Sequence record: OP310983.1
DNA: 64,000 nucleotides
Reading direction: 5' to 3' (one strand)
Shown here one piece after another: positions 21,785 to 51,722 of this stretch. Position 1 is the first letter of the stretch; the number at the start of each line of letters is the position of its first letter. The notes below the pieces were generated by a model. That model saw only the letters and a list, made by a program, of their open reading frames with translations, was not told the origin of the DNA and did no database searches. A program made the translations under genes and the position numbers.

Positions 21785-21830
21785 CATAAACCCCTCTCCA
21801 CATGGAGAGGGGCCTGTCTTTATTTTTTTT
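21785..21830. terminator. Bidirectional hairpin terminator
   Basis: cataaa-cccctctcc-acat-ggagagggg followed by a long T tract; lies between convergent genes. Confidence 0.7.
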
Positions 21831-22327
21831 TATTTAGTTAACGGCTTGTTTAATTCATTTAACTGGTTATTGTTATTAACAGCTTCATTATGGGTAATAT
21901 TTCTACATAATTCAATTATGTATTCTACCTCAGAATAAGCTAATTCAAAGAATTCAGTTAATGACATATTAGATAAGCTACCTACTTTATACTTGAAGAA
22001 ATCTCTAGTCAGTCTCCTTCTCAACCCACCTTCGATAAAGTCCTCTTTAGGATTTACCTTATTTAACCACATGGGTCCGTTTTCTGGTGAACCGATATCG
22101 TAATCAAGTAGATATGCTTCTCTTGTTAAACGTGCTGCTGTAGACGGTCTTACTGCCCCTACTGTCGATAATAGTCTATCTAAGTGTGTATCATCTTCAG
22201 TTAACTTATCATAACCAAAGTTTGGATGTAGGATGTGACCACTATCTTCCTTGAAAGTGGCCTCAAGACGACTATATCTCAGATCATTAACTACACCATC
22301 CGGTTTGACTTCGAGGCCGCCAAAGTA
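21830..22327 (-). CDS. gp76-like ORF, probably the -1 frameshift extension of gp77 (TAC GT-like)
   Basis: Frame open from 22345 to 21833 with no ATG/GTG/TTG before 22072; overlaps the gp77 end at a T7 slippery run. Confidence 0.6.
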   Translation of the reverse strand, partial: YFGGLEVKPDGVVNDLRYSRLEATFKEDSGHILHPNFGYDKLTEDDTHLDRLLSTVGAVRPSTAARLTREAYLLDYDIGSPENGPMWLNKVNPKEDFIEGGLRRRLTRDFFKYKVGSLSNMSLTEFFELAYSEVEYIIELCRNITHNEAVNNNNQLNELNKPLTK

Positions 22328-23892
22328 AAAAAAGTTGACAGCATGTCAATAGGGATTAAGTGTGGGAAACGTTCTTTAAATTTAGTAGCAGCAGGTGACT
22401 CACATACTGGACAATTCCAACTTGTAATTGCAATCATTCCAATTAGTTGTGAATCAATGAAGTTACTCACCGCATTAATAAAGCGGTCATTATATTCCGG
22501 TGTGGATAGAATATTAGTTAAGAACTTTTCAATAGTTTCACGATTAGTGGTTGCAGTACGAATATTGTCTTCAGAACTTTCACCATCGTCATCTTCACGT
22601 ACTTTAATTTCTTTAACAAAATGTGAGAACTGACGGGCAATAGAGATCTTTTGTAAACGTGCAATATACTGAGAACGTTGCGGACCATCGACTGGTTCAT
22701 TAAAACTACCTTGAGTCATATCGATAATTGAGTTAATCCAACTATCACCAGACTCTCGGCGATCAGCAATTGTACACATCTCAAGAACAACACCAACGTC
22801 ACCAAACATTTCAGTTACTTGAGTTTCAATACGGAATCCTTCTTTATAAGTCTTAAGATCAGATTCAGTACATGCATTAAACTTACGTGCAATATATTTC
22901 TTTTGTTCTTCTGAGAATGCCAGTAGATCATATTGAACAAGCGTTGACATATTAAGTTTCGCTGTTTCAATATGGTTACATGTATTGGCATCTGCAATGC
23001 ATGGATAACTATAATTAAATCCATCTGGATACATAGTCGCCGCTAGTGCGTGATGCAAGAACGGCTCATCAGCTACTGAGATAACATGCTCTAGATCAGT
23101 TGGGGTGTTGAACTTATAGTTGGATTGAATAACACATGCAAGTGCTAAACTACTAACCATGTTAAGTAACACAGCTGCCATGTTTGAGAACAGCATACCT
23201 TTTGATTCAGCGCCTAGCCGGATCTTTAATTGTGCTAGACGTGCTTGTAGGGCAGCTACTTCAGTACCAGTAGGTGCACGTAGTTTTACCCAAATACCTG
23301 AATGAGGTAGGAAAGTATCATATGGCGTACCGATGTTAGCTTTACGTGTTAGGAAAACTAGAGTTTCATCATCGGTCATTTTACGACCATTGGTATTAAA
23401 TACAGGTCGGCCAGGTCGAATGATCTTTTCACCATAAGGAATTTCACTAGACCATTCAGAACCTTCTCGGGCAGTTGCACCGATTGGTGCATCTTCAACA
23501 ATAGAGTGAGCTAAGCCTTCCAGAATAGCAGCTGTCCACTTTACACCGTCACTAGTGTCATCTACTTTATTATCAGCAAATGCTTTAAATAGTTCTTTAT
23601 TGTGATCCAGGAAATTATAAACAGTCTGGGGATTCTCACGTAGTAAAGTAAGAATGCTAGCACTATCTTTAATAGCCGGTTCAGAAGCATCCCGGATATT
23701 TCCAGTTTTAGCATTACGTGGAATACGTAGTTTAATTTCTTTTTGATCAGGAACGAAAGGTGGAGTTTCCACCTCGTCATTATTTTCAATACTAGAGTCA
23801 GGATCGTGTTGCGCATTGATCTCATCAATTTGATCTAGTAAATTCTCTTCTGGAGTATCATCGTACTCATTATCGAAGTCAGCAGTAGCCAT
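22291..23892 (-). CDS. gp77-like protein, putative tail/baseplate assembly chaperone
   Basis: 533 aa with SD; acidic N-terminus, WVKLRAPT, two Cys clusters (C..D..TC and WNCPVC); function inferred. Confidence 0.75.
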   Translation of the reverse strand: MATADFDNEYDDTPEENLLDQIDEINAQHDPDSSIENNDEVETPPFVPDQKEIKLRIPRNAKTGNIRDASEPAIKDSASILTLLRENPQTVYNFLDHNKELFKAFADNKVDDTSDGVKWTAAILEGLAHSIVEDAPIGATAREGSEWSSEIPYGEKIIRPGRPVFNTNGRKMTDDETLVFLTRKANIGTPYDTFLPHSGIWVKLRAPTGTEVAALQARLAQLKIRLGAESKGMLFSNMAAVLLNMVSSLALACVIQSNYKFNTPTDLEHVISVADEPFLHHALAATMYPDGFNYSYPCIADANTCNHIETAKLNMSTLVQYDLLAFSEEQKKYIARKFNACTESDLKTYKEGFRIETQVTEMFGDVGVVLEMCTIADRRESGDSWINSIIDMTQGSFNEPVDGPQRSQYIARLQKISIARQFSHFVKEIKVREDDDGESSEDNIRTATTNRETIEKFLTNILSTPEYNDRFINAVSNFIDSQLIGMIAITSWNCPVCESPAATKFKERFPHLIPIDMLSTFFTLAASKSNRMV

Positions 23893-23903
23893 TTAAAACT
23901 CCA

Positions 23904-24398
23904 TTATTGTTGAATTAGTTTTTCGTCCCAACCAGCTTCTCGAAGAGTGCCGATCATCGCTAGGATTACACCATCAATACCGCGTTCAATAGCACCTTCA
24001 ATACCAGTGTATTTAGTAACAAGTTCACTGATGAGTTTTAGTTCATCTTCATTATTTGCTGGACCAGCCTTACCTTGATGTTGTGCATATAGGACACTGA
24101 TAATTTTAGTTAGTCGATTAAGGTCAGCAATAACTGTTTGTAGGTTCTTTTGGAATCCAGTAGGATCAGATAACGTCGGAATGATTTCATTGATCTTATT
24201 GATAACTGGATTAATGAATACTTCAGTTTGTAGAATACGTTTACCTACGGAACCTGCTAGTACATTGACAACATCCCAACCATCACGGTTAAGAATATGA
24301 TCAGCTGCGGCAGCTGATGCTCCAACTGCACGTTCAAATAGACGTAGAGTCTTTTCCTGTTCTTTAGTTAGAGTTGGTTCTTTAGCTTTATTTGACAT
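23904..24398 (-). CDS. Hypothetical protein (gp78-like)
   Basis: 164-aa helical ORF. Confidence 0.8.
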   Translation of the reverse strand: MSNKAKEPTLTKEQEKTLRLFERAVGASAAAADHILNRDGWDVVNVLAGSVGKRILQTEVFINPVINKINEIIPTLSDPTGFQKNLQTVIADLNRLTKIISVLYAQHQGKAGPANNEDELKLISELVTKYTGIEGAIERGIDGVILAMIGTLREAGWDEKLIQQ

Positions 24399-28348: not shown

Positions 28349-30265
28349 ATGTCTAATGAACAACAGGTTACAAATAAGAAAAAGATTAAGGGCATTGAAG
28401 CCAAACATATTACTTATTGTACTGATCAATTTGGTAAGTTTACAGATGCGCATTTCGTTAAAGAACGAATTCATTTTGAAGATGGTACAACTGCAAATAA
28501 TTTAAGGATGTGGGAAAACTACCAGCGTCCTTTTTGGATTACCTCAAAAGGAATGCGTAACCATAAAGAAAAGAAAGATTACGAATATGAGCGTAACTTA
28601 GTTAAATACATGTCAACTCAAATTGACATGAAACGTAAGATTAGTAAAATCCTAGGTGACTATTCGGCTAGATCTCTTCGTCAACTAGCGCGTAGTCCTT
28701 ACCTATATGGCAGTGATGTTAGTTCAACCTGTTATCTGAAGCATGATTATCAAGAACGTTATCCTGGTCTAATCTCTCTAAACACTGTTGCTGGCGGTGA
28801 CATCGAAACCAACGTTTATGAAGCTGAGAACGATGGCCAGATTATCTGTATGTCAGTTACACATAAGAACAAAGCTTTCCTAGCCTATTTAAAACGATGG
28901 GTTAGTGATATTGAAGATCCAGTGAAAGAGACATTAGAACAAGCACAAAAAGAAGAGGTATTATCACATCTAATTAAAGAACGTGGTCTAGATATTGAAG
29001 TAATGGTTGTTGAAACACCAGTAGATATTATTATTGAATGTTTTAAACGACTACATACCTGGAAACCAGATTTCTTCGCATTCTGGAATATTAGCTTCGA
29101 CATTGGTAGAATCTTAAAAACATTAGAACACTATGGTGTTAATCCAGCTGATGTTTTTTCTGATCCATCGGTACCTAAGAATTATAGGTATTTCCATTTT
29201 AAGATTGATGAACCTATGACCACCACTGCATCTGGGGTCACTAAATCTAAAGGACCGGAGGATCAATGGCATTGGATTACAGCACCCTCTAGTTTTCAAT
29301 GTATCGATTCTATGTCAACTTATCGAGTAACTCGATTAGCTAAAGGACGTGATCCTAACTATCGGTTAGAGTCTATTCTTAGAAAAGAACTAAACATCGA
29401 TAAATCCACGACCATTAAAAATGATAAGGACTTAGAAGATTTTATTGAAGGTTTTAATAAACAACTAGTTGACCGACCAGGCGGCGTTATTACTAAATAT
29501 ATTAAAAATGTAGGTAGTAATGAATGGGTACCGGTGGATGATTTTATATTAAATGATAACTTTACCTATGGTGATTCTATTAGATATGTAATGGAATTTG
29601 GTAAGTTAACCTTTAAAGAAACTGCACATCTTGGTGGTATCGATTGGCACCGTGAGATGCAGACTAAGCATAAAATCAAATATGGTCTTTATAACATCAT
29701 CGACTCCATTCGACTAGAACAACTTGATGAACAAGTAAATGACCTTGGTCGCTCTATAAGTCTATTCTCTAAGGCATCTGACTATAAGAACTTTAGTTCT
29801 AACCCAAAACGACTATGTGACGATATGCACTTCTGGTATTTGAATAGACCAGAGCCATGTGTCATTGGTTCAAGTTCAGATCAGATGGTGCATGAACTTG
29901 ATCAATATGTTATTGGCCATAATGATTGGATTGTTACACTACCATCATACATGGCAGGTCCAAATGGATTGCAGTGTGTTAAAGATTTACCGAATTATAA
30001 AACCTTAATCTTCTGTCATATCGCCGACCTTGACATCGTGTCGACATATCCTAACGTTAGTCAGATTCTAAATATTGCACGTGAAACATGTGTGATGGAA
30101 TTCTCAATGATGGAAGGAATTAGTGAACACCATCGCCGTGAAGTTGGCGTAAACTTAACAGGTGGTAGGGTTAATGCTATTGAAATCACACAGAAGATCA
30201 TGGGTGCTCCTAAAATGGACACCCTGCTAGAGAAGTTTATTAATACCTATAAGAACCCAAAGTAA
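28349..30265 (+). CDS. Split family-B DNA polymerase subunit with 3'-5' exonuclease (gp82-like)
   Basis: ExoI DIET, ExoII FWNISFD, ExoIII YNIID, PolB motif A DIVSTYP; motifs B and C absent. Confidence 0.85.
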   Translation: MSNEQQVTNKKKIKGIEAKHITYCTDQFGKFTDAHFVKERIHFEDGTTANNLRMWENYQRPFWITSKGMRNHKEKKDYEYERNLVKYMSTQIDMKRKISKILGDYSARSLRQLARSPYLYGSDVSSTCYLKHDYQERYPGLISLNTVAGGDIETNVYEAENDGQIICMSVTHKNKAFLAYLKRWVSDIEDPVKETLEQAQKEEVLSHLIKERGLDIEVMVVETPVDIIIECFKRLHTWKPDFFAFWNISFDIGRILKTLEHYGVNPADVFSDPSVPKNYRYFHFKIDEPMTTTASGVTKSKGPEDQWHWITAPSSFQCIDSMSTYRVTRLAKGRDPNYRLESILRKELNIDKSTTIKNDKDLEDFIEGFNKQLVDRPGGVITKYIKNVGSNEWVPVDDFILNDNFTYGDSIRYVMEFGKLTFKETAHLGGIDWHREMQTKHKIKYGLYNIIDSIRLEQLDEQVNDLGRSISLFSKASDYKNFSSNPKRLCDDMHFWYLNRPEPCVIGSSSDQMVHELDQYVIGHNDWIVTLPSYMAGPNGLQCVKDLPNYKTLIFCHIADLDIVSTYPNVSQILNIARETCVMEFSMMEGISEHHRREVGVNLTGGRVNAIEITQKIMGAPKMDTLLEKFINTYKNPK

Positions 30266-30633
30266 TATATCAGTGGAAGCGCCGAGGAGGATATGAATGT
30301 TCATCTGTTGGTGACAAAAGATTCTCGGCTCTTTACGCAAGGCTTCCTGATGGCAGAACAATTGAGGAAGCTTGGCAGTTAGATTGTAAAGGATATCGCA
30401 TATACTCCAACCATTGGAAAGCTGGTAAAGGAAAACCACCACTAGACGGGTATAATCCCAAATATGATGATTATAAAAATCTGTGGAAAGTATGGGCGGT
30501 ATCTAATAAACATCTAATGGATGAATTGCGTCAGAATGCAAAAGAACATGATAACTATCTTTCTGATGTTTTTGCTTCTACTGATATTTCACAGGCACGT
30601 GCTCTAGCAGAACTACTTAATGAAGGATATTAA
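30265..30633 (+). CDS. Start-less conserved phage ORF, NADAR-like by eye (122 aa from ATA)
   Basis: Frame open 30253-30633: IYQWKRRGGYECSSVGDKRFSALYARLPDGRTIEEAWQLDCKG...QARALAELLNEGY; no upstream ATG/GTG/TTG in frame. Confidence 0.65.
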   Translation: MYQWKRRGGYECSSVGDKRFSALYARLPDGRTIEEAWQLDCKGYRIYSNHWKAGKGKPPLDGYNPKYDDYKNLWKVWAVSNKHLMDELRQNAKEHDNYLSDVFASTDISQARALAELLNEGY

Positions 30634-49271: not shown

Positions 49272-51722
49272 ATGATGGTAAATATTCACAAATATGTAGC
49301 CAGCCTTGAGAACCAAGATGGTACGGCTGTGGAACAGGATGTATCCAAAGTCGAGACATCTGTTAAAGATGATCATGAACTAGTTCAAGATTTAAAGAAA
49401 GATAATGATGCATCTGCAACTATTGAGAATGAAACTGTTAAAACAGATACTGATATTATCTCTGCTGAAGAACATGAAGAAACAGCACATGCTGCTGATA
49501 AGTCAGCAGTAATTGTTGAAGAAGTTGTACCAGAAGAAACTGTTGTTGAGGAAAGTATTCCTGAACCGCTAGCTACCACTAGTGTCGAAGAAGGCGAAGA
49601 AGCAGTTAAAGTTGCTGAAGCTGAAATCGCTGAAGAAATCGGTACAATTTCTGAAGGCGGTAAAGAGGTTTTAGATTCAACCACTGAAATTATTGAAGCT
49701 GCACAAGATGCGGCTGATGATACTGAACTAGTGCCTGTTGCAGAAGCACCTGGTGAAACAGCAGTGGAATTAACTCCCACTGAAGAAACCCCACTTGGTG
49801 ACGAAACTCCGCCTCCTGCACCACTGTCTGAAGAACTTCCAGCTGGTGATGAACCCGTGTCATCCACTATGGATACACTACCGGATGAAGTATTAGATGC
49901 TGGTGAAGTTGTAAGCGAAGCAGTTCCTGGTATCGATGATGATGTAACACCGGAAGAAGCCGGTGCTGAACAGACAACTGCTGATGAAAGTTCCAATGAT
50001 GAACCTGATGCAGAGATTACTGAAACTGAAGAAGTCGATGTTACTGAACCAGCTGTAGCTGATGCTGAAACAGAAGTTGTTGAAACCGTGGAAGACACGC
50101 CGGATACAACTGATAGTGAAGTAGCTGAAGTAGTAGAGACGGAATCTGAAAGTATCCCTGCTGAAGCTGAACCGGATGAAATCGTAGCAGTTGATGAAGA
50201 AGTAGCTGTAACTGATCCAATTGTAGAAGAAGCTGCCGAAACAGCAGAAGTAGCTGAAGACGGCTTAAGCGAATTGGAAGAAGTTCGGGATGAAGCTGAA
50301 GAAGAATTAACTAATGATGACAGTGATTCTACTGATGTATTAATTAATGAAGCTGAAACTGAAGAAACAGTTGCTGAAACTGAAACAGCATCTACTATTG
50401 CTGAACCAACAATTGAAGAAGGTGCAGTTGAAGATGATAGTGAAACAATTGTCGCTGAAGCTGATGATGATGTCTCTGAAGATGACATCGAAGAGAAACT
50501 AGCTGAAGGTGAAATTGATATTCCAGATGTCGATGTAGAAGTAACTGAAGATGATGTTGAAGAAGCAGATGAAGCTGCTGATGAGGCAGTTGCTGAAGCT
50601 GATGATCTTGAAGATGAAGTTGAGGACAGTAAGAAGACCATTGGTCAATTACTTGAAGAGCAGGCATCAAATGAATCAATGCTTGAGATTCTGCATTATG
50701 GACTAGAACATAAGCAGTATAGCCCTCAGTTCATCGTTCATGCTAATAGCTGCTTAGAACGTCTACACAATGCCTTTGATGTCTATTCACCTGGTATTCC
50801 AGCAATGGAAGATTATGGTTATGGTAATCTAGAAGATTACTATAAGGCGATGGTTACTTCACTAGAATCATTTAATAGCACTATTGGTAAGTTTGTTCGA
50901 AATATTATCGACAATATTGCTGAAGGTGCAAATGCATCCATCCATGTTAAAGCTAACCAAAAAGAACTCGCCGCAGCTAATACTAAAGCTGACCAACTTC
51001 TAGTTAAGCTTAAAGACACTGATAATTTTGAAAGTAAAGAAATCAAAATTAATGGTATTCTAAAAGGTGATGATAATCTAGTGCGTGGTGTTGCTGGAGA
51101 GGTTCGTCGTATTAGCGATATTATTAACAAATGCTTTAAAATCGATGGTGAATACATCGAACGTTTAGTTGGTCATCTAGCAACTGCTATTGAAGCTGAT
51201 AGTGAAGAAGCTATTGATAAGGCTCTAGAAGAAGCAACTAAATTAGAAGTACCTGTTAAGAAATATCCTGAAAGCGCATTCATTAGTGGAAAACTAGATG
51301 GTAGCTTTGTATTTGAGCGCTCTGGCCGTGATGTCACTGGTCGAACCAGTAAAGATATTGAACGACTAGCAGCTATTGCACTTCCAACTGGTGAATGGGG
51401 TGCTACCGGCACTGGCACTGCTAAAGTTAGCCGTAAAGACGTTACTGAACTAATGAAACTTTCTAAAGTTCTAATTGGTCTTGGTAATGCCTCTCTAAAA
51501 GTTAGCGGTAACCGTGGTGTACGTCGTCTTGACCAAGCTAACCGTGATATCTCTAAAGTGGCTAGCATGGATAGTAAAGCCGGTAAAAAGAAAGTCCGGC
51601 AACTAGCTGGCGCAGTATGGGAAGTTGTTGGCCAATCGGCTGAAAACCACACCATTCTAGTTGATTACATTGTAGCTCTTACCAATGCAATTAACACTGC
51701 TGTGAATCGTGCCATTAAGTAA
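49272..51722 (+). CDS. Inner-body protein (gp97-like) with a very acidic propeptide
   Basis: 816 aa; about 450 aa E/D/A/T/V-rich, then AME/SLE sites and a helical domain. Confidence 0.82.
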   Translation: MMVNIHKYVASLENQDGTAVEQDVSKVETSVKDDHELVQDLKKDNDASATIENETVKTDTDIISAEEHEETAHAADKSAVIVEEVVPEETVVEESIPEPLATTSVEEGEEAVKVAEAEIAEEIGTISEGGKEVLDSTTEIIEAAQDAADDTELVPVAEAPGETAVELTPTEETPLGDETPPPAPLSEELPAGDEPVSSTMDTLPDEVLDAGEVVSEAVPGIDDDVTPEEAGAEQTTADESSNDEPDAEITETEEVDVTEPAVADAETEVVETVEDTPDTTDSEVAEVVETESESIPAEAEPDEIVAVDEEVAVTDPIVEEAAETAEVAEDGLSELEEVRDEAEEELTNDDSDSTDVLINEAETEETVAETETASTIAEPTIEEGAVEDDSETIVAEADDDVSEDDIEEKLAEGEIDIPDVDVEVTEDDVEEADEAADEAVAEADDLEDEVEDSKKTIGQLLEEQASNESMLEILHYGLEHKQYSPQFIVHANSCLERLHNAFDVYSPGIPAMEDYGYGNLEDYYKAMVTSLESFNSTIGKFVRNIIDNIAEGANASIHVKANQKELAAANTKADQLLVKLKDTDNFESKEIKINGILKGDDNLVRGVAGEVRRISDIINKCFKIDGEYIERLVGHLATAIEADSEEAIDKALEEATKLEVPVKKYPESAFISGKLDGSFVFERSGRDVTGRTSKDIERLAAIALPTGEWGATGTGTAKVSRKDVTELMKLSKVLIGLGNASLKVSGNRGVRRLDQANRDISKVASMDSKAGKKKVRQLAGAVWEVVGQSAENHTILVDYIVALTNAINTAVNRAIK

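Follow-up and report, generated by a model that had tools for sequence, protein, structure and literature searches.

Gene gp77 (PHIKZ077) of a phiKZ-type phage probably undergoes, near its 3' end, a programmed -1 ribosomal frameshift that joins it to the frame of the small annotated open reading frame (ORF) gp76.4 (PHIKZ076.4). To this reading, which extends to the whole phage family and is derived from the comparison of related loci, we assign a probability of roughly 0.8. The locus is part of a stretch of 64,000 nucleotides of sequence record OP310983.1, hereafter termed the window, which represents bases 1-64000 of the phage; the 2.3 kb around the site show 100% identity, at unchanged coordinates, to Pseudomonas phage Koomba boorn-mokiny kep-wari Wadjak 1 (OP310983.1) and ~99% identity to phiKZ. 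In a core-genome paper, phiKZ gp077 is listed as cg18, a core gene of nucleus-forming phages encoding a 'hypothetical protein'. A prior description of a frameshift in this gene was not found in the literature searched, and 'gp77' in the papers found refers to the numbering of other phages. A preliminary description of the window had put forward the -1 frameshift from gp77 into the gp76.4 frame, and this central proposal is strongly supported by the comparative evidence presented below.

According to the proposed mechanism, ribosomes translating the gp77 mRNA would encounter a U-run close to its 3' end, within the overlap of the two frames. The majority would stay in frame and terminate soon afterwards, giving rise to a 533-amino-acid protein that ends in a short helix. 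A fraction would slip back by one base, with tRNA-Phe re-pairing on UUU, and read the -1 frame up to the stop at 21830-21832, thereby producing a protein of ~687 amino acids. In this long form, a linker of ~45 residues followed by a ~120-residue helical domain would take the place of the terminal helix, and PHIKZ076.4 would constitute the tail of this extension and not a separate gene. We infer that the slip occurs on the ribosome and that both products are of importance to the phage.

Overlapping frames at the end of gp77

The 80-amino-acid ORF PHIKZ076.4 is the terminal part of a frame that stays open back to position 22345 and comprises 171 codons, the first 91 of which are devoid of ATG, GTG and TTG. 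Relative to the 533-amino-acid ORF it constitutes the -1 frame, and the two overlap by 55 nucleotides. Inside this overlap resides a run of seven T in the register of the 0 frame, which in the window forms a full slippery sequence of the X XXY YYZ type. The sizes of the two predicted products, 533 and 687 amino acids, follow from the Phe pair at gp77 residues 521-522 and the 165 codons of the -1 frame beyond it. Given the frequency of stop trinucleotides in the window (0.071), 73 stop-free codons, which is the length of the start-less part outside gp77, would arise by chance with P = 0.0047, and 165 with P = 5e-6. Of the 49 stop-to-stop intervals of at least 150 codons in the six frames of the window, none but this one begins with 40 or more codons lacking a start. 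The preliminary description was accurate in these respects: its ORF coordinates, the frame open from 22345 with 91 start-less codons, the register of the T-run and the product sizes are all borne out by the sequence, and the same applies to its estimate that 73 stop-free codons have a chance of less than about 1%.

Maintenance of the layout across the family

For comparison, 26 annotated phage loci and 20 loci from IMG/VR were collected; once duplicates and a truncated contig had been discarded, 38 distinct complete loci remained, covering at least 20 genera or metagenomic lineages and including phages of Pseudomonas, Erwinia, Salmonella, Vibrio, Ralstonia, Xanthomonas and Bacillus. In all 38, the frame of the downstream piece is -1 relative to the gp77 homologue. 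A T-run of five to eight, in one fixed codon register and within the last 80 codons, is present in 37 of them. Past the run, the 0 frame ends after 8-44 codons and the +1 frame is mostly short, whereas in 37 of the 38 loci the -1 frame remains open for 149-179 codons and terminates where the annotated downstream ORF does. In about half of the loci, among them those in which the two frames overlap by 37-45 codons, a stop interrupts the -1 frame within 4-6 codons upstream of the run; hence, the frame is maintained only from the run onward. Stops in the upstream extension of the 80-amino-acid ORF, or a start codon of its own, had been named beforehand as signs that would speak against a frameshift in the orthologues. 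The former are thus missing past the run in all but one locus, while an ATG does occur, though at positions varying among relatives from 18 to 114 codons into the frame.

A single locus among the 38, that of Pseudomonas phage RVTF4 (PQ015378.1), carries one extra frame change in the extension after 58 codons, representing either a sequencing error or a real lesion.

When the 171-amino-acid open frame was used as a tblastn query, matches of 34-40% identity were obtained in PS119XW, Psa21, PhiPA3, Phabio, Noxifer, 201phi2-1 and others, beginning at residues 1-6 of the query, so that similarity starts well upstream of any start codon. The gp77 protein itself matches 226 phage records from many hosts. 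A fused single-ORF version was not found by phmmer with the 171-amino-acid piece among 1.84 billion representative proteins; all 38 matches are 45-175 amino acids long, have ragged N-termini and begin at query residues 5-89. Similarly, the 20 gp77 homologues retrieved by a word-indexed search measure 485-633 amino acids, and none of them is fused.

Two BFVD entries of 686-687 amino acids resembled a fusion by size and were rejected: SPN3US, a relative of the Erwinia/Salmonella group, has a longer N-terminus, and in each of the two genomes the extension is matched by a small protein of its own. For the extension, the word-indexed search returned only one partial protein, a 96-amino-acid 'hypothetical protein, partial [Klebsiella pneumoniae]' from a 288-nucleotide contig, which is 90% identical to the start-less part. 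This fragment resembles phiKZ-like DNA that was filed under a Klebsiella assembly, probably because of contamination or because a read set had been mislabelled.

Homopolymer runs are common sites of both sequencing errors and mutations, which raises the question of whether a formerly continuous gene has been broken by a mutation or by a misread homopolymer. This explanation is effectively refuted by the distribution of the layout. In a phage collection, the 111 nucleotides around the run are free of insertions and deletions in 47 of 47 phiKZ-like records, near-identical genomes that were sequenced independently, and the run is therefore not a sequencing slip. Moreover, the same layout recurs in the 38 diverged loci, both parts are under purifying selection, and an unbroken version is absent from the databases searched.

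Selection on the run and on the start-less part

In 37 of 37 loci the run opens with the codon TTT; its second codon is TTT in 23, TTC in 12, TTA in one and TTG in one. In most of the gp77-homologue ORFs, however, TTC is the commoner Phe codon; the share of TTT ranges from 0.04 to 0.60, and in Xoo-sp14 not one of the 13 other Phe codons of the ORF is TTT. The product of the usage-based probabilities for TTT amounts to 10^-21.9, a value uncorrected for shared ancestry. An invariant TTT against the prevailing codon preference indicates selection on the nucleotides themselves, beyond the conservation of the Phe pair. The length of the run is less constant: it consists of eight T in Ea35-70, RSF1 and Halocynthia phage JM-2012, of five in PS119XW, HPP-Temi, Noxifer and the metagenomic loci L036, L039 and L041, and of six in many others. 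The expected conservation of a run of seven T was consequently borne out for its register and its TTT codon, but neither for its length nor for its first T, which is missing in about one third of the loci.

Selection at the level of amino acids, likewise anticipated in the preliminary description, acts on the extension. For the part that is start-less in phiKZ, the Nei-Gojobori ratio of nonsynonymous to synonymous substitution rates (dN/dS) is 0.07-0.16 in the ten pairs with unsaturated dS, and thus as low as that of the remainder of the extension.

These observations also bear on the possibility of two separate genes, in which the downstream frame would be translated from the ATG at 22072 (yielding the 80-amino-acid protein), from a start codon of a non-canonical type or by ribosomes that re-initiate past the gp77 stop. 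Current annotation is in line with it, since each of the 26 annotated phage records lists the downstream ORF separately, a joined coding sequence being given in none; the annotated start of 201phi2-1 gp135 overlaps the stop of gp136, those of Ea35-70, RSF1, PCH45 and FBKp24 lie 12-20 nucleotides past the stop, and the window holds another small gene that seemingly lacks a canonical start (see below). The annotated starts, however, are scattered within a conserved protein, as is evident from the ragged matches and the shifting first ATG described above, and purifying selection acts strongly on the part that precedes them. In addition, the phase is invariably -1, while re-initiation at the stop would not require a -1 frame that is open from the run despite overlaps of 37-45 codons, and the TTT of the run is selected against codon preference. 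Finally, gp77 and gp78 each have a GGAG upstream, but a Shine-Dalgarno-like sequence was not found before the ATG at 22072. Altogether, a two-gene arrangement appears very unlikely.

Nature of the proposed slip

Bacterial RNA polymerases may stutter on homopolymers, and slippage of the phage RNA polymerase within the T-run would generate a minority of mRNAs of altered length, from which the same long protein would be translated; on the level of the protein, the outcome would be indistinguishable from that of a ribosomal slip. The signal is indeed a homopolymer, with seven T in the window and eight in the three phages named above, the RNA stimulator typical of ribosomal frameshifting was not found, and chimalliviruses possess unusual multisubunit RNA polymerases of their own, encoded by neighbouring genes. 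On the other hand, many lineages have runs of only five or six T, which are too short for appreciable stuttering by bacterial RNA polymerases, and the codon register is the same in all 37 loci, a property that matters for the re-pairing of tRNA but not for a stuttering polymerase. Transcriptional slippage is thus regarded as unlikely.

A programmed ribosomal frameshift in turn has to be weighed against several observations that do not favour it. Both Phe residues are conserved as amino acids as well, and the conservation of the run is therefore partly a matter of the protein. The base preceding the run is not T in about one third of the loci, which hence lack a full X XXY YYZ heptamer, and slippage would there rest mainly on a single tRNA-Phe, the second. 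The metagenomic locus L036 has the same layout with a run that is shorter by one codon. The long product is a prediction from sequence comparison. Furthermore, a conserved RNA stimulator is not evident: a common stem was absent from 20 sequences of the Pseudomonas group (RNAalifold consensus -0.45 kcal/mol), single-sequence folds of the relatives revealed no conserved stimulator, the segments after the run of 31 loci are not more structured than same-size segments of the same loci (median percentile ~0.5), and a Shine-Dalgarno-like stimulator upstream of the run was not found.

The preliminary description had pointed to a stimulatory stem downstream of the run. Its arms exist and pair within the minimum-energy fold of the window sequence (-19.4 kcal/mol), but the fold of this region is ordinary (z = -0.87; 36 of 200 shuffles fold as well), and its role as a stimulator gains no support from the relatives. 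An Rfam search gave no match either. Since a conserved stimulator is not evident, the ratio of slipping would probably be set by the run alone, like that of lambda G/GT.

The hallmarks by which frameshift sites are recognised are therefore distributed unevenly at this locus. A slip-prone run in the register of the 0 frame, a long start-less -1 frame under selection and the conservation of both in diverged relatives are present, while a stimulatory structure 5-9 nucleotides downstream or a Shine-Dalgarno-like element upstream, which are common though not universal, were not found.

Possible functions of gp77 and its extension

The AlphaFold model of gp77 has a mean predicted local distance difference test score (pLDDT) of 62 and a predicted template-modelling score (pTM) of 0.65, and it ends in a C-terminal helix that would be lost in the long form. 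A Foldseek search of BFVD with this model returned, after the chimallivirus homologues, entries named 'Baseplate hub assembly protein, bacteriophage T4-like' and 'Baseplate hub assembly chaperone', at E values of 4e-5 to 1e-4, template-modelling (TM) scores on the target of 0.53-0.58 and root-mean-square deviations of 8-11 A for a query of pLDDT 62. A baseplate-hub-assembly label is also used by some depositors for gp77 homologues. With regard to the location of the protein, the record note of 201phi2-1 gp136 bears no virion mass-spectrometry mark, unlike that of its neighbour gp138, and the text of the paper on the Goslar virion structure does not mention gp81, the cg18 homologue of this phage. 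In T4, likewise, assembly depends on gp51, although the particle does not contain it (PMC3004832).

Sequence profiles and solved structures gave no support to a function in hub assembly. A match for gp77 in the PDB was obtained neither by profile sequence search nor by Foldseek (best E = 2), gp77, the extension and gp78 match no Pfam family and no named PHROG, and NCBI-style names do not point to a function either. The Pfam family PF12322, which recognises T4 gp51 and gp26 at 177 and 216 bits, does not match gp77 or any of 17 homologues. An hhalign comparison of the gp77-homologue profile with the gp51/gp26 family yielded a probability of 19% over 23 columns around CPxC, and comparisons of the gp77 profile with T4 gp51 and gp26 alone were not significant. 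Because the profile comparison reaches only 19%, the likeness of gp77 to the T4 hub proteins is structural and tentative. Of the gp26/gp51-like Cys motifs ascribed to gp77 beforehand, a CPxC-type motif does occur in both and is accompanied by the Foldseek likeness, but a family relationship is indicated neither by Pfam nor by hhalign.

In the model of the extension, ~45 linker-like residues of low confidence precede a helical domain, a block in which pLDDT is mostly 81-98. By fold, this domain matches only the downstream ORFs of other chimalliviruses and no named protein, a profile search of the PDB gave no match to solved structures, and the hhalign probability for a relation to the T4 gp51/gp26 family is 0.1%. 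The suggested resemblance of the extension to the T-segment of tail assembly chaperones or to the C-terminus of T4 gp51 was thus not upheld. A possible role, to which we give slightly less than even odds, is that gp77 acts as a non-virion factor of baseplate-hub or tail assembly in the manner of T4 gp51/gp26, with the extension serving as a binding module on a fixed minority of the molecules.

Genomic context and other features of the window

The features of the locus are compiled in Table 1. On one flank, gp77 is bordered by gp78, gp79 (a head protein) and a subunit of the virion RNA polymerase, and on the other by four tiny ORFs, a helicase and a non-virion RNA polymerase subunit; the caveat of the preliminary description that no tape-measure gene is adjacent is therefore justified. 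The genes gp78 and gp77 probably share a transcription unit, and in the relatives fetched the gp77 homologue is likewise preceded by a small gene on the same strand. The hairpin beyond the extension separates the convergent genes gp76.4 and gp76.3 and may be a bidirectional terminator.

Table 1. Features of the gp77 locus, in window coordinates
Feature	Position	Strand	Basis or remark
gp77 (PHIKZ077), 0-frame ORF, 533 amino acids	22291..23892	-	phrog_4585; core gene cg18
Open -1 frame, 171 codons plus stop; the 165 codons after the run are the predicted C-terminal extension	21830..22345	-	frame analysis; tblastn in distant phages
Overlap of the 0 and -1 frames; contains the T-run, its only homopolymer slip-prone sequence	22291..22345	-	sequence, conservation
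Start-less part of the -1 frame outside gp77, ~73 codons; protein-coding by selection	22073..22290	-	dN/dS
Annotated 80-amino-acid ORF PHIKZ076.4, C-terminal part of the predicted extension	21830..22072	-	ATG not preceded by a Shine-Dalgarno-like sequence
Predicted helical domain of the extension, residues ~50-171 of the 171-amino-acid piece	21833..22198	-	structure model
Candidate stem, including both arms	22259..22318	-	in minimum-energy fold; neither unusual nor conserved
Hairpin of 9 pairs, G+C-rich, terminator-like on both strands	21791..21812		18 nucleotides past the extension stop
gp78 homologue, 164 amino acids, own GGAG and ATG	23904..24398	-	phrog_14050, unknown function; upstream of gp77

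A second start-less frame is located at 30253..30633 (+) and comprises 126 codons, the first 88 of which lack ATG, GTG and TTG. It is the -1 frame of a 638-amino-acid ORF at 28349..30265 (+), which occupies the position of phiKZ gp82 and is called 'DNA polymerase' in some records; the overlap amounts to the last 13 nucleotides of this ORF, and a heptamer of the X XXY YYZ type is situated immediately before the stop. The 125-amino-acid product is 58-69% conserved in other Pseudomonas chimalliviruses and shares ~50% identity with small genes that stand alone in Achromobacter N4-like phages and in Sphingomonas phage PAU. The homologous first codon is ATG in PhiPA3 and in one uncultivated viral genome (UViG), where stop and start overlap, GTG in 201phi2-1, ATA in the window and ACA in another UViG, and the heptamer together with the open -1 frame is present in five of the five loci seen. 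This arrangement would be explained either by a second frameshift or by translational coupling together with a start at a near-cognate codon.

In addition, the 816-amino-acid gene at 49272..51722 (+) harbours on its opposite strand a 418-amino-acid ORF (49385..50641, -) and a frame of 123 codons without any start (49893..50264, -). These antisense frames are probably by-products of the composition of the gene.

Significance

Phages of the phiKZ type serve as a leading model for studies of the phage nucleus and find use in phage therapy; gp77 (cg18), however, is still termed 'hypothetical'. If recoding applies to the whole family, every annotated genome of the family examined mis-describes this locus, and one 'core gene' and one 'accessory small ORF' would be a single gene with two products. 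Gene callers assign inconsistent starts to the downstream piece, whose database entries range from 45 to 175 amino acids, and for this reason phrog_12109 (147 positions) and similar models miss the N-terminal third of the domain. The locus would also provide a clean natural case of a U-run that serves as a minimal signal and is retained over a host range from Pseudomonas to Bacillus, and thereby inform on what bacterial ribosomes require in order to slip. Should the proposed function in hub or tail assembly prove true, the rule that long-tailed phages make two frameshift-linked forms of an assembly factor would extend to a group that appeared to be an exception.

Relation to known recoding systems

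The dnaX gene of Escherichia coli, which encodes tau and gamma, employs the heptamer A AAA AAG together with a Shine-Dalgarno-like element upstream and a hairpin downstream, and its shifted product is the shorter one. The predicted gp77 frameshift resembles it as a bacterial-type -1 slip on a homopolymer-like heptamer with two products in a fixed ratio, but differs by the lack of a conserved stimulator and by a shifted product that would be longer. Transcriptional slippage on A/T-runs, known from insertion sequence (IS) elements and from Thermus dnaX, likewise uses a homopolymer as the signal and has the same outcome for the protein; the known cases, however, need runs of about 8-9 or more, as opposed to the run of 5-8 with an invariant codon register in gp77.

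With T4 gp51 and gp26 (Pfam PF12322, T4_baseplate), gp77 has in common the names of its Foldseek matches and a conserved motif of the CPxC type. It differs in that no relation is discernible at the level of sequence, gp77 is twice as long and the extension is unrelated; moreover, the T4 genes 51 and 26 have no annotated frameshift. T4 gene 26 (NC_000866.4, 5803..6429) gives rise to a second, internal product, 26', from the same frame, which shows that expression of two products exists in the PF12322 family by another route.

The closest parallel in layout is the tail-assembly-chaperone frameshift, including lambda G/GT, the conservation of which among long-tailed phages was reportedly established by Xu, Hendrix and Duda in 2004. 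In both cases a -1 slip, predicted for gp77, is placed near the 3' end of the upstream ORF, the 0 frame soon stops and the downstream frame is start-less; the long product consists of the short one and an added C-terminal domain, the layout persists despite sequence divergence, and lambda likewise needs no RNA stimulator. The preliminary description had gone further and regarded gp77 as a tail chaperone of the G/GT type, a membership that fails on context, size and family: gp77 comprises 533 amino acids versus ~100-150 in G-type chaperones, its slip sequence is a U-run, it is not next to the tape-measure gene, and it lacks a match to the chaperone families, whose entries appear in Foldseek at E values of only 0.22-0.79.

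A functional counterpart without common descent is conceivable, although we consider it doubtful in its full extent. In this wider scenario, all Chimalliviridae would possess an ancient and obligatory -1 frameshift in cg18 that supplies a fixed mixture of a T4 gp51-like factor of hub or tail assembly and its C-terminally extended form, in a family for which no such pair was known before. The role fulfilled by G and GT in other long-tailed phages would then be taken over by a far larger protein of no relation to them, which would be encoded apart from the tape-measure gene and recoded without an RNA stimulator.

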